Below, one piece after another: positions 52,448 to 58,320 of a DNA stretch of 64,000 nucleotides. Position numbers and translations under genes: made by a program. Numbering within the stretch: the first letter of the stretch is position 1; every line of letters starts with the position of its first letter. Source of the stretch: Amoeboaphelidium protococcarum X5 (Eukaryota; Fungi; Aphelidiomycota); NCBI GenBank assembly GCA_023515725.1, contig JALDTO010000146.1:682001-746000 (forward strand). Direction: 5' to 3'. The notes under the pieces were generated by a model. That model was not told where the DNA came from. It saw only the letters and a program-made list of their open reading frames with translations, and ran no database searches.

Positions 52448-52724
52448 TATTCTCAATTGTATATTGTTTGATTTGCGCTGGGCATTCGACTGCTTTGAAT
52501 TACTCGCTGTCCATTCCATAATGCATCATAATGCCTTACCAGTCGCATCGCACTAATAAGTCACTGTCATAGGTGAAGAATGTGGACGTCAACGCGTTTG
52601 TCCTATACTGATGGCATGAAATGACTACTCAAACTGGTGTGTATAATAACATAGCTAGAATGGAGTAAAAATTTGTCCTTAAGTCTTTAAAAAATCATAA
52701 CGCTTGGTTCGGTAGTAGGGGGTA

Positions 52725-52884
52725 TGTTGGGTTTTATGTTCTGTCGCTAACCTAACCGTCGTCTCGGATAAGGAGAAATTTGCTGCGCCACTTTGTTTCT
52801 TGATCTCTGATCAATAGAGCTCAGCCACACGGCACGTATACTATTTAATTGACTTTTGTCTATTCTATTTTGCTTATTCTAACA
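52725..52884 (+). repeat. 5' LTR (160 bp)
   Basis: TGTTGGG...TCTAACA; matches 57741-57901 with 4 substitutions and 1 indel by eye. Confidence 0.95.
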
Positions 52885-52895
52885 TCTATTGATCA
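52885..52895 (+). promoter_or_regulatory. Putative self-priming primer-binding site TCTATTGATCA
   Basis: Abuts the 5' LTR, lacks the TGG of a tRNA PBS, and is the exact reverse complement of LTR positions 52808-52818. Confidence 0.7.
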
Positions 52896-52898
52896 ACA

Positions 52899-53906
52899 AT
52901 GAAATCTGGTATATCATCTGTGGGGGTTCTGTTTGACGGTTCCAATCGCCGTCGCTGGAAGAACGCGTTATACGCGCAACTACAATCAGCTGGGTTGGAG
53001 TATGTCATTGATGTCGAGTTCCAGGATACGCTGTAACGTATCCCTGATCGTCATACCCTTCGCGATAGGAAAATGGATCTCCTTGCTAAAAAGAAAGTGG
53101 AAGATTCTGATTTTGAGGCACTGGCAGACAAAACATCCTTTATGCCTTGTAGTGAACACGATCAGCAAGCTGCGCTAATTACTTTTCAAGAGGAGCAGCA
53201 TCAGGCTAACTCGATGGTTTTGGGGCTGATTAAAGGGTCCGTGATCCCTGAAGTGCTTAGTAGTATTGGAACTCAATCGTCTGCGTAGGAAGCTCTTGAG
53301 GCTGTCGAAGAGTATTTCAATCTAAAGGCTCCTAGTAACGCAAGTAACATTGATGCTAAAATCAGAAATGAGCTGTGTGATGACAAGTATCACTCTGCCA
53401 TGCAGTTTGTTGTCCAGCTGGAAGAGTGGTTTGATGACTTGACTGACTGTGGCTTCGGAGCCATGGATGAGAATCAGTTTGTTCAACTTGTGGCTTTGAA
53501 GCTGCCCTTGCCTAAGTACAATGAAGTTCGCAAGATTGTGATGAATCTAAACATCAACGTTACTAATAAATCTGAAGAGCTTGTTGAAAAGTTAAGTCTC
53601 ATTGGATTAAAGAAATCAATTCTGCACACTGACAATATGGCATTGTTAGAGTAATAGTGTAATCGTCCGTATGCATCCTCCCCGGTGTCCAGTGACAAGG
53701 CGCGTCAAGTTGAAGCTGCTGTTCAAAATGTTACAGGTGTGAAAAGACCTTTTGCCTAACGTCAAGGGGGGCGTATCATTTGCGATAATTGCGGCAAGTT
53801 TGGTCACAGCAAGAGTGATTGCTTTGCTGAAGGTGGTGGGAAGGAGAATCCAGACTCTCCGCAGTATAAGCGATTCAAAAATGCTGGCTGGATTAAGAAG
53901 AAATGA
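52899..53906 (+). CDS. gag: Copia Gag with CCHC zinc knuckle
   Basis: ATG52899, 335 codons, 'CDNCGKFGHSKSDC', ends 'WIKKK' TGA 53904-53906. Confidence 0.88.
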
Positions 53907-56900
53907 CGCCGAACTGAGTCGAGTGATATGAACTAAGAGAAGGAATTTTCACCCGATTTATCTTTTCTGGATCGCATTTCTACTGTCTTGGCTTAGAGCA
54001 GCGATGATATTGACTGGACATCATCTTGGCTATATGACCCTGGATCGACTGATTTCATCACTTGTCGATAAGATTGGCTTTTGAATGAGTCTAGCTGTTA
54101 AGTTAACAGTTTTGGACTAGTGCAAGGTCCTGGCACCAAAGTCTCTTCTATTGGCACTATAGTAGTTTCTTTAAATGATGGTGAAGGTGATTGTCGTGTT
54201 GCTCAGTTTCATGATATCTGCTACTCACCGTAATATAGGTTTAATCTGGTTCCAGGTGGTAAGCTAGCCCAGCAAGGTTTTCGATCAGTATTAGATGACA
54301 AAGGACTAGAAGTTTTCAAAGACGGAAAGAAAATTCTGTCTGGTTAACTGTTGCGTAATGGATTAGTACTGCTGAATATAACAGTGCTGTCTCCAGACGT
54401 GTGTGATCTGGATTCGCTTACGAACTCGATAATTAGTGCTGTTAACGTTCAGGGATCTCAGCCTCTCTCGTAAATGGATTTTCATGTTGTCTTGGGCCAT
54501 GTCAACTTCTCGTGTGTCCGATCTATGTTTAAAATGAACTACTTCGAGAACTGGAACATAGACGAAGACTCCATGGCCGTTAAACTGAACCAGTAGGACT
54601 GTGATGTCTGTGTACAATCAAAATTTGTTAAAGCTTCGTATTAGGCTGATGATGCCAAGTCCTTACGATCATCTCAGTCGTTGGAGCTCCTGCATGTTGA
54701 TCTAATTGGTCCAATCCAAGTTCTGTCTCTTAATAGGTAAAACTATGTCCTTGTTGTACAAGATGATTATTCTGGGTATACCTCAGTGCGTTTGTTGAAA
54801 GCTAAAAGCGACGCGTCTGTTGAGCTTCGTCGTTTGTGTGCCAAATAGTGCGATCTGCTAGAGAAGTCAGTAAAGACCATTCGGTGCGACCGTGGTAGTG
54901 AGTTTCTGAATGCTGTTATCTCGGACTGGTGTGCAGACTTAGGTATCGTGTTGGATCTGACCCCCGGCTATACTCCAGAGAGAAATGGTGTTGTAGAGCG
55001 CTGCATTCGTACTCTCGTGGAGCGCACTAGGTCTTTCCTGCTTGATAGTCAAAGTCCTAATTTTCTGTGGGGTTTTGCTATGGAATCTGCGGCGTATCTG
55101 CAGAATCGGCTGCTGACTAGTGGGCGCAATCGTGCTGGATAATTGAAGTGTACGCCCTTTGAAGTATTTTTTGGAAATAAGCCTAAGTTATCACATGTCA
55201 TCCCATGGGGAAGTATGGTTCATTACTTTGTACCGAAAGAGAAGCGTGTTGGTAAATTCAAATTCTCGTCCACGTCTGCCTTAGGTCGTTTAGTTGGATA
55301 CAGTGAGTCCGATAAAGATTTTATTGTCCTACCGCAGCATTCGCGCTCAGTAATACCTGTCAGCTACTAATCTGCTGTAGCTGCTATGTAGTCCAATATT
55401 ACTGATGCTGCTGGATTGGAAGATTATAACTTCTTGACAACTGCTATAGATGAGCAGTCAGTATCTGATGGTTCAGACTGCATGTAATTTGATGTAATGC
55501 CCAGCCAGGGTGCTGCGGGACATACCAGCTAAAGCGCTGAGAGGCATGTTGCAAGGGGTGACTAGAGTGTCACCTATATGTCAAGGGACTTATTGACCAG
55601 CTAAAGTGCTGAAAGGGATCTCAACGATAGTAATGAGATTGCCGCTACTGAATACAGCTAGAGTGGAGTAAAAGTAGTAGAGCAATAATCCACTAGTTGC
55701 AGTGATGATGAAGAGCTCATCCGCATAAGTGAACCTAAGCCATATGCTGTCGAGCCTAAAGCGGCTTCGAGTGCTGATTTAGATGACCAGACCGTTAGGC
55801 AGCTTAGCATATCTGAAAGAGATGTTGCAATCAGTGACCCTGAAGGGTTGTCTGTGACTGAGAGCATGCCTGGAGATTATGATGATTGGCCAATTCCTAC
55901 TTTCCCCAATGGTTCTATCTCTGATGTTAATCCTTCTAAGTAACACCTTGCTCATTTGATGAAAGTTAACGATAGCGCTGTTGTGCTTAGTCATCTATCA
56001 TCTTGGCTTCATGCAGTAGATGACCACCATTGGTTTGATTGGGACGAAATTGTAAGTCTGTCAACGCTACTAAGTCCAGATTCGCGTCATATTCCTCAAA
56101 CGTACAGAGAGGCTATGACTTTGCCCGATAGCGGCTTCTGGTAGGAGGCTGTAGACTCAGAGTGGGGTAGTATGCTCAAGAATGAAACACTTGAACGGTG
56201 CGTGCTTCCACCAGGTAGAAAGGCACTACCGTGTCGTTGGGTTTTTAAAATCAAGATCAAGTCTGATGGTACTATAGAGCGTTACAAGGCGCGTCTTGTC
56301 ATCAAAGGTTTTAAACAGGTTTATGGTCTAGATTTCTTTGATACATTTGCTCCGACTCCAAAGAATAGCACCGTCAGGTTAGTTCTATCGGTGGCTGCCC
56401 ACATGGATATGGAACTACATCATGCTGATGTGTCCACGGCTTTCCTCAATGGAGATCTCGAAGAGGAGATATATGTAATTGCTCCAGATGGTACTCCCCC
56501 TGCAGGCGAGGTCCTGAGACTGAGGAAGAGTGTATATGGCTTAAAGCAAGCCCCTCGTCAGTGGAATAAGAAACTGCACGAAACTCTTGTTGGACTTGGC
56601 TTTAAACGTTGTCATTCTGATAATTGCCTATATACTCGCACTCATCAAAACAGATTGTTCCTGCTACTGATTTATGTTGATGATTTAGTTCTTGCTTGTA
56701 AGTCAATTGCTCAGATTTAAGAAGTGAAGTAGTAACTGAAGAAGTCTTTTGACATTCATGATCTCTAGGAGCTTGAGTACTTGACTGGCATCCGTGTTAA
56801 CAGAGATCGCAGTAAAAGGTAGATTGTGCTGGATTAAGAAACCTACTGTAAGAAGATTCTATAGCGCTTCAAGTTTGAAGACTGTGCACCTGCTCCTACG

Positions 56901-57716
56901 CCTATGTCAAAGCGCATGTTAGTGGACAACAACAAGTTTTCTGATATCTAGCAGTATCGTGCAGTAATTGGTAGCATCATGTACTTGATGGTCGGCACAC
57001 GTCCTGATCTGACGTATGCAGTTAGTGAACTTTCCAGGTATTGTTCATCTCCTGGCCTCAGTCATTGGAGTGCGCTTAAACGGCTCCTACGCTATATTGC
57101 TGGTACTAGTGATTATTCGTTGGTTATCGATGGTTCCTCTTATGACGCTCTGATACCAAGGGTATATGTAGACTCAGATCATGCTGGTGACCTGCAAACG
57201 CGTCGTTCTGTGTGTGGTTATGATGTGAAGCTTTGTAACTGCGCTATAATTTGGAAATCAAAGCTGCAGCCTTAAACTGCCTTAAGTTCCACAGAGGCGG
57301 AATATTACGCTGCATTTTTTGCGGGTCAAGAGATAGTCTGGCTCAAAGAACTGATGAAGGAAGCTGGCATCAGGCGATTACTATCTGAGGTTTCTATTAA
57401 GAGTTCTGATCTATTCTGTTAGAATGTTCAAAAGCACCCGTTTGACTCAACGGTTGTTTTCGAAGACAATGAAGCTTGCATCAAGATTGCTAAGAATCCA
57501 GAGAAGTTCTAGCGCACGAAACACATAGAGGTTCGATATCACATACTACGCGAATGGGTTGAGAAGAACATAATTCATTTTGAACATATTGGTTCTAATC
57601 TTTAGATTGCTGATCTGCGGACAAAGCCTGTTTGTAGAACGATATTATATAGACATCTGGCGTCACTTGGCATTGTATCTAGTTAGTCTCTTTACTCTGA
57701 AAGGTCCGAGGGATGA
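53907..57716 (+). CDS. pol: Copia Pol (protease, integrase, reverse transcriptase, RNase H), same frame as gag
   Basis: PR 'WLYDPGST'; IN 'HVVLGH..CDVC', 'LHVDLIGP', 'RCDRGSEF', 'NGVVER'; RT 'YKARLV', 'DVSTAFLNG', 'YGLKQAPR', 'YVDD'; RNase H 'YVDSDHAG', 'SSTEAEY', 'EDNEAC', 'IADLRTK'. Confidence 0.95.
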
Positions 57717-57740
57717 GGAGATGCTCAGAACACGGGAGCG

Positions 57741-57901
57741 TTTTGGGTCTTATGTTCTGTCGCTAACCTTAACCGTCGTCTCGGATAAGGAGAAATTTGC
57801 TTCGCCACTTTGTTTCTTGATCTCTGATCAATAGAGCTCAGCCACACGGCACGTATACTATTTAATTGACTTTTATCTATTCTATTTTGCTTATTCTAAC
57901 A
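57741..57901 (+). repeat. 3' LTR (161 bp; begins TT instead of TG)
   Basis: Direct repeat of the 5' LTR, preceded by a short purine-rich GGGAGCG (weak polypurine tract). Confidence 0.95.
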
Positions 57902-58320
57902 GGGTACATAGATAACTACCTACCTACATTGTAGCTATATAGTTAAAATTGAAAAAACTAGGTAGGTACCTACATTGTAAATAGGTATATTATATGAGTA
58001 GGGTTTGGGCAGATCTCTGGTTCGTGGGGCTCTAAAAATGTTTTTAAATTTTTCTTTTTGGTTCATTGGATGATGTGCAGCTTGTTTCATTAGTATTTTC
58101 ATATGATATTTATCGCTATAAATGGTTCCCATTGAAACTGATCTTAAATCAAAATAATCTCTCTGAACCTGTGTCTTTCCTTTAACTGATAAGTCACCTT
58201 AATTGATTTTACGCTTGCTGAATATCACCATTGAAGTCGCACCAATTGATGAATTGTCGCGTCACTTAATTGTCACTGGCATTGCTCGGATTCTAAATCA
58301 GTAGCACTAATTGTATGATC

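Follow-up and report, generated by a model that had tools for sequence, protein, structure and literature searches.

The window, i.e. the whole stretch of 64,000 nt from the algal parasite Amoeboaphelidium protococcarum on which the analysis was carried out, contains an intact LTR retrotransposon of the Ty1/copia type, 5,182 bp (about 5.2 kb) in length. Its features are reported in Table 1, together with the primer words of its sister families and the tRNA-Ile sites discussed below. Pfam, run on pieces free of stops, assigned zf-CCHC to the gag piece 53760-53903, rve to 54849-55139 and SH3_retrovirus to 55143-55367, the latter two both lying upstream of RVT_2 (56145-56717, E = 6e-50); YVDD and DSDHAGD motifs are found in the table-6 translation. 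The order of the domains, gag - protease - integrase - RT - RNase H, establishes the element as a member of Ty1/copia. The pair of LTRs with TG..CA ends, flanked by a 5-bp duplication, leads to the same assignment, the TT of the 3' LTR being a single change.

Table 1. Features of the window element, primer words of the self-type families and tRNA-Ile sites. Positions refer to the window, unless a contig (C) is named.
Feature	Position	Strand	Remarks
Target-site duplication, 5' copy	52720..52724	+	GGGTA, matches the 5 bases after the 3' LTR
5' LTR	52725..52884	+	160 nt, TG..CA; direct repeat with 57741-57901, 98% identical
Predicted self-primer	52808..52818	+	TGATCAATAGA, 11 nt; perfect reverse complement of the PBS
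Predicted remainder of R, and U5	52819..52884	+	66-nt loop under the primer:PBS helix, from the fold
Predicted primer binding site (PBS)	52885..52895	+	TCTATTGATCA; adjoins the 5' LTR, offset 0
gag ORF	52899..53906	+	335 aa, CCHC zinc knuckle; table-6 translation; TGA at 53904
pol ORF	53907..57716	+	1269 aa, PR-INT-RT-RNase H; table-6 translation; frame shared with gag
Polypurine-rich tract, putative function	57734..57740	+	GGGAGCG, short; adjoins the 3' LTR
3' LTR	57741..57901	+	161 nt, TT start; 11-mer inside at 57825-57835
Target-site duplication, 3' copy	57902..57906	+	GGGTA
F6 (window family)			LTR word TGATCAATAGA; post-LTR TCTATTGATCA; complement 11 nt; loop 66 nt
F3			LTR word TGAAGTAGAAA; post-LTR TTTCTACTTCA; complement 11 nt; loop 48 nt
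F1			LTR word TGAGGATAAAA; post-LTR TTTTATCCTCA; complement 11 nt; loop 41 nt
F4			LTR word TGAGGATAAAA; post-LTR TTTTATCCTC; complement 10 nt; loop 49 nt
F2			LTR word TGAGAATAAA; post-LTR TTTATTCTCA; complement 10 nt; loop 49 nt
L076 (second strain, GCA_023515745.1, F2-like)			LTR word GAGAATAAA; post-LTR TTTATTCTC; complement 9 nt; loop 40 nt
tRNA-Ile(AAT) genes	C146:144860-144932; C150:3085-3157; C207:655101-655173; C212:403762-403834		
F7/F11 PBS sites	C264:97275-97287; C235:124106-124118; 9 others		

The two LTRs of the element differ at 3 positions. The 3' LTR starts with TT (57741-57742), where the 5' LTR has TG, and carries one additional T within an AACC(T)TAACC run. About 12 further LTR copies of the window family (F6) are present in the genome, mostly as solo LTRs, and there is a single full-length copy. 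G-rich words similar to GGGAGCG are also found 5' of the 3' LTRs of other copia families.

When read by the standard code, the interior of the element is interrupted by many stops. The same holds genome-wide for the 30 RVT_2 matches, in which the in-frame "stops" are all TAA or TAG, except for one TGA in total; the gag-pol frame of the window element, 1605 codons long, contains 42 TAA or TAG codons and is otherwise open. The host code therefore reads both TAA and TAG as Gln and has TGA as its sole stop, and this is why the element looks broken. Elements of hosts with reassigned codes may easily be taken for dead copies during annotation. Under the host code, gag and pol share one frame and are separated by a single TGA (53904-53906), followed by a C (AAA TGA CGC). 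The shared frame and the lone TGA imply stop-codon readthrough at the only stop codon of the host. Readthrough of this kind is a known strategy, used by Candida Tca2 and by MLV.

The initial annotation had pointed out that the 11 nt directly following the 5' LTR do not look like a tRNA-type PBS and are, instead, the reverse complement of a word contained within the LTR. All of this was confirmed. The words at 52885-52895 and 52808-52818 are complementary and inverted at 11 positions out of 11, with 66 nt between the two arms; the match is exactly 11 nt long, with the LTR end as its anchor, and the flanking C (52807) and A (52896) are unpaired. The same 11-mer is retained at the equivalent place of the 3' LTR, and the downstream site shows neither a TGG start nor a half-tRNA-iMet motif. 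The gag ORF starts 14 nt past the end of the LTR, which leaves no space for a separate PBS upstream of it. In a survey of plant elements, a self-primer was defined as complementarity over at least 10 bp between the 5' LTR and a region starting 0-5 bp past it (PMC6317226); the window element falls within this definition, with 11 pairs out of 11 and an offset of 0.

The probability of such an arrangement occurring by chance was evaluated by comparing this LTR with 20,000 random flanks, of which 4 gave an anchored complement of at least 10 nt and one gave 11 nt, corresponding to p-values of about 2e-4 and 5e-5, respectively. A fortuitous inverted repeat could be favoured by the TGATCA palindrome, which by itself provides 6 of the 11 pairs at any place in the LTR where it occurs, and the 11-mer is about fourfold over-represented in the genome (62 sites, about 14 of them due to LTRs of the window family, compared to 15 for the reversed control). 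Random flanks, nevertheless, reach an anchored complement of at least 10 nt in only about 2 cases out of 10,000. Furthermore, three additional sites found by a pattern search for an LTR end followed by TGATCA are unrelated, with neither an LTR nor a complement, and four other families show non-palindromic equivalents of the pairing, as described below. By the null test and the covariation, coincidence is effectively refuted.

The initial annotation had looked to covariation among related copia families as a check on its reading, and compensatory changes were indeed found, in families F1-F4 and F6 of the same genome and in an F2-like element, L076, of a second strain (Table 1). The LTR words of all of them start with TGA; this shared start, together with the ending of the complement after 10-11 nt, lends indirect support to the prediction that the word is the 5' end of the RNA. 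Between sequence classes, 4-5 positions are altered on both sides with the pairing retained, so that LTR words score 10-11 out of 11 when paired with the PBS of their own family, and 5-7 out of 11 when paired with that of another. Since the LTRs of F1, F2 and F4 are related, these comparisons amount to about 3-4 independent sequence classes, not 6. The 10-nt complement of F4 is intact in the 3' LTR; in the 5' LTR, which is old, it carries a single G>A substitution. The LTR ends were fixed by the 5-bp duplications for F2 (ATGCA), F3 (ATTCG) and F4 (CTATG). No target duplication is present in F1 because its 5' LTR is truncated; the start of its 3' LTR was placed by the TG dinucleotide and by likeness to the LTRs of F2 and F4. 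LTRs are very short throughout, ranging between 120 and 217 nt. Four copies of F2 and three of F3 are 100% identical over the 5' LTR and PBS, which indicates that elements with this geometry have been active recently.

For families F5, F8, F10 and F12 a 5' LTR was not found. The F5 copy lacks one, and its distant LTR relatives, on contigs C98 and C250, belong to a larger repeat; the F8 copy is rearranged, and contig C32 is too short to include a 5' LTR. A protein homology search with P0037 yielded no additional proteins from the second aphelid strain.

Upstream of the LTR word, a weak motif similar to GAGAAAT(T) or to GTGAAAAAT is found at a distance of 20-36 nt in most families, and of 68 nt in F1. 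Speculatively, it may represent a TATA-like element.

Binding of a host tRNA, or of a tRNA fragment, at the site following the LTR was considered next to these results. Half-tRNA priming is common in copia elements and also occurs in this genome, and the host tRNAs compared were the best 63 of 1171 candidates. The 62 genomic copies of the 11-mer all lie outside these 63; judged on this set, the window element does not appear to be primed by a tRNA or half-tRNA, as the initial annotation had anticipated. The PBS, as mentioned, does not start with TGG. The four distinct PBS sequences are each matched to their own LTR, and the families which are truly tRNA-primed behave differently, with one PBS maintained across divergent LTRs. 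An overlooked tRNA primer thus seems very improbable.

Three families of the same genome illustrate this second pattern. The PBS of F9 is complementary to a host tRNA-Met(CAT) gene over positions 27-40 of the latter; ARAGORN confirmed the tRNA, and the 14-mer is found at two tRNA loci as well as in four copies of the element. Families F7 and F11 share an identical 16-nt PBS, despite having quite different LTRs. The complement of this PBS is found at 11 genomic sites with a G, which are TE sites, and at 4 sites with an A; all of the latter fall within scored tRNA-Ile(AAT) genes, at the anticodon AAT (Table 1). As the PBS carries a C opposite position 34, it would pair with the inosine of the mature tRNA-Ile, a kind of pairing already reported in plants, for the Bianca lineage (PMC6317226). 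Family F8 clusters with F7 and F11 in the RT tree. In F9, F7 and F11, the anchored complement to the LTR does not exceed 4 nt. The tRNA-primed pattern is therefore that of one PBS combined with differing LTRs, whereas F1-F4 and F6 have differing PBSs, each matching its own LTR. The PBS of a further family, F13, resembles a half tRNA-Lys; the assignment is based on likeness to the FunCo1 PBS quoted in PMC5445492, and ARAGORN identified no tRNA at the sole matching genomic site.

The ability of the predicted leader RNAs to fold was also analyzed. For positions 52808-52898 of the window, both the MFE and the centroid structures are closed by the 11-bp helix, with an energy of -18.9 kcal/mol (z = -3.8), and none of 200 shuffled sequences was equally stable. 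For each of the five families (F1-F4 and F6), the MFE fold of the predicted leader has its loop closed by the primer:PBS helix.

Given the anchored complementarity, its covariation in the sister families and the lack of a tRNA match among the best 63 of 1171 candidates, the best explanation is, quite probably, self-priming by the RNA of the element itself, in the manner of Tf1. That the pairing between LTR and PBS has been under selection appears more probable still. Transcription would start at or close to 52808, inside the 5' LTR, and the first 11 nt of the RNA would fold back on the 11-nt PBS adjoining U5, leaving an R-U5 loop of 66 nt. The RNase H of the element would then cut the RNA after nucleotide 11 (52818/52819). 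At its 3' end the 11-mer has an A, which pairs with base 1 of the PBS; the released 3'-OH, at 52818, would therefore be located exactly at the LTR/PBS border, and its extension would run directly into U5 and on into R. The later steps of reverse transcription, strand transfer included, would follow as usual. The initial annotation had proposed a tRNA-independent, self-priming copia lineage, and the core of this proposal is strongly supported by the covariation across families and by comparison with the tRNA-primed ones; its views on how widely self-priming is described and on the hairpin sites of fungal elements did not stand, as detailed below.

The same complementarity could also be used in trans, the primer being the 5' end of a co-packaged partner RNA or a separate short transcript derived from the LTR. 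Covariation fits the cis and trans arrangements alike, and the palindromic core of F6 (TGATCA/TTGATCAA) could aid contacts in an RNA-RNA dimer. This palindrome, however, is specific to F6, the primers of F1-F4 being non-palindromic, and the MFE fold of each of the five families has a loop of 41-66 nt closed by the helix. Tf1, which provides the experimental precedent, acts in cis (PMC7175516). Priming in trans is accordingly considered unlikely.

A slightly lower probability is given to the pairing serving some other step, such as a packaging fold, dimerisation or control of gag translation, with another host RNA as the real primer. The short distance between the LTR and the gag start is compatible with a helix that also regulates translation, and self-priming is a prediction from sequence. 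On the other hand, an alternative PBS is absent, and the tRNA-primed families of the same genome do not have this complement. The duplex always ends exactly at the border between the LTR and the internal region, a position which is relevant only to the 3' end of a primer, and the PBS differs among families, which excludes a shared host primer.

Two genomic fragments bear on the cut that self-priming would require. The first one, L016 (C205:82915-82987, minus strand), is an isolated fragment of 73-75 nt corresponding to window positions 52820/22-52894. It comprises R past the 11-mer, U5 and 10 nt of the PBS with one mismatch, within unrelated, GC-rich surroundings, and has the appearance of a minus-strand strong-stop DNA that was captured. 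The second one is the F1 copy on contig C233 (L058 668-709; C233:289267-289308), of whose 5' LTR only the terminal 42 nt remain; the homology to the 3' LTR starts exactly at nucleotide 11/12 of the predicted RNA. Both footprints start 0-3 nt past the 11-mer and would fit a processed RNA 5' end, though they are single cases which could be coincidences. Strong-stop-like fragments were not seen in F2 and F3.

Self-priming is a known mechanism, of which the window element would be a further example, and the novelty of the case does not lie in the mechanism. To our knowledge, experimental proof of it is limited to Tf1 and Tf2. In Tf1, the 11 bases at the start of the RNA anneal to the PBS, and RNase H cleaves between nucleotides 11 and 12 (PMC7175516). 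In Tf1 and Tf2 of Schizosaccharomyces pombe, as in the window element, the PBS adjoins the 5' LTR and is complementary to 11 nt of RNA derived from the LTR of the same element; in the window element and its sisters the complement is 10-11 nt long, and closure of an R-U5 loop is predicted from sequence. The elements themselves are not of the same kind. Tf1/sushi elements are Ty3/gypsy chromoviruses, with the order RT - RNase H - integrase and, usually, a chromodomain; in the window element the integrase precedes the RT, which is RVT_2 and not RVT_1, and nine pieces of pol and gag scanned with Pfam yielded no chromodomain. Tf1 has, furthermore, an extended U5-IR structure, for which no counterpart was established in the window element. 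The window element is thus separate from Tf1/sushi.

The initial annotation regarded self-priming as described for gypsy-type elements only. This view is out of date, since self-priming has also been predicted in plant copia elements: the families Houba and Osr-1 have been proposed as self-primers, and of 203 elements of the TAR lineage 89% are predicted to be so (PMC6317226). The TAR lineage, which includes Houba and Osr-1, has in common with the window element the copia type and the same sequence definition of a self-primer. TAR elements differ in that their hosts are plants, the window element being hosted by an aphelid, a fungus relative, and in their mean size of 6.3 kb, compared to 5.2 kb, with LTRs of 120-217 nt, in the present case.

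The initial annotation also mentioned that some fungal GalEa copia elements carry a hairpin site centred on TGATCA in place of a PBS, which is accurate (PMC5445492). Such elements, in which the Conserved Hairpin Site was described by Donnart et al. in 2017 (PMC5445492), resemble the window element in being copia without a tRNA-type PBS, and in that the 5' LTR is directly followed by a short, conserved sequence built around a core of TGATCA or TAATTA. The suggested link between their hairpin sites and self-priming is, however, unsupported. In GalEa, CHSeq1 is a palindrome taking in the last A of the LTR, and its partner, CHSeq2, is located 12-41 bp downstream, with a fixed A/A mismatch; the authors searched for a complement in the LTR and found none (PMC5445492). 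The partner of the window-element PBS lies 66 nt upstream, within the LTR, and a downstream pairing partner, as expected for GalEa, was not found. Protein motifs differ as well, the window element showing KARLVI, YVDD and TRPDL, compared to KSRLVI and QTDD in the RT and CQPEA in the RNase H of fungal GalEa (PMC5445492).

The copia elements primed by half-tRNAs, such as Drosophila copia, Ty5, Osser and Bianca, share with the window element the superfamily and the overall layout, and the same kind of primer is used by the sister lineages F9 (tRNA-Met) and F7/F11 (tRNA-Ile, inosine-34). The window PBS, unlike theirs, co-varies with its own LTR and has no match in the best 63 of 1171 tRNA candidates.

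Relatives outside this genome were identified by a HMMER search with the RT piece; besides aphelid proteins, the closest ones with readable junctions were read, and contigs L081 and L082, which are 5'-truncated, were left out of this reading. Metagenomic relatives L077, L078 and L080 have half-tRNA-iMet PBSs. The best plant match, L079 from Arabidopsis, has a classical tRNA-Met PBS, TGGTATCAGAGC, which weakly argues against a close affinity to TAR. As the closest non-aphelid relatives are primed by half-tRNA-iMet, an origin independent of TAR, with which the comparison was made by published description, is likely.

In the RT tree of the families of this genome, F1-F4 and F6 are grouped on short branches, and the tRNA-Ile and tRNA-Met/Lys lineages form separate, well-supported clades. 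The tree does not strictly separate the self-type families from the tRNA-Ile lineage as one clade. The likeliest course of events would be that half-tRNA priming gave way to self-priming among the copia elements of aphelids. A wider proposal is about evenly poised between acceptance and rejection: that self-priming arose independently in an opisthokont copia clade from half-tRNA-iMet ancestors, that it coexists with three tRNA-primed copia lineages in one 23.6-Mb genome, and that the captured strong-stop DNA and the truncated LTR mark the RNase H cut to within 0-3 nt. If true, Tf1 would have a natural counterpart among copia elements, which would lend itself to studying the way in which retroelements exchange their primer.

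The families described here are apparently the first candidate copia self-primers outside plants. Self-priming of copia elements has so far been a bioinformatic prediction for one plant lineage, to which a compact second case, outside plants, may now be added. Several recently active sister families, with differing primer/PBS pairs, reside beside tRNA-primed copia elements in one cell, and would constitute a natural experiment, in which one could ask by what route and for what reason LTR elements replace their primer, and whether the RNase H of a copia element is able to cleave an RNA duplex in the way of the Tf1 enzyme. In annotation work, a copia element reported with "no PBS found" should prompt a check for LTR complementarity.

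A few related loci show rearranged or partial forms. The metagenome scaffold of L077 (ENA, 10,809 bp) consists of a head-to-tail repeat with a period of 5,353 bp and an identity of 99.96%, and represents either a tandem or circular form of an LTR element or an assembly artefact. L021 (C233:318165-321921) includes, at locus positions of about 1380-1470, a gag-bearing relative with 79% identity and the PBS TCAATTGATCA. In its LTR, the segment equivalent to window positions 52814-52852 is inverted; the inversion puts the palindrome TCAATTGA at the place of the 11-mer, so that a pairing of 8-9 bp is retained. L023 (C264:2481538-2481745) and L024 (C154:380802-381007) show 78% identity to the start of the window gag. 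They have no recognisable upstream LTR, carry an intron-like insertion after about 20 codons and a TTGATCA before the ATG, and may be domesticated or decayed gag genes.
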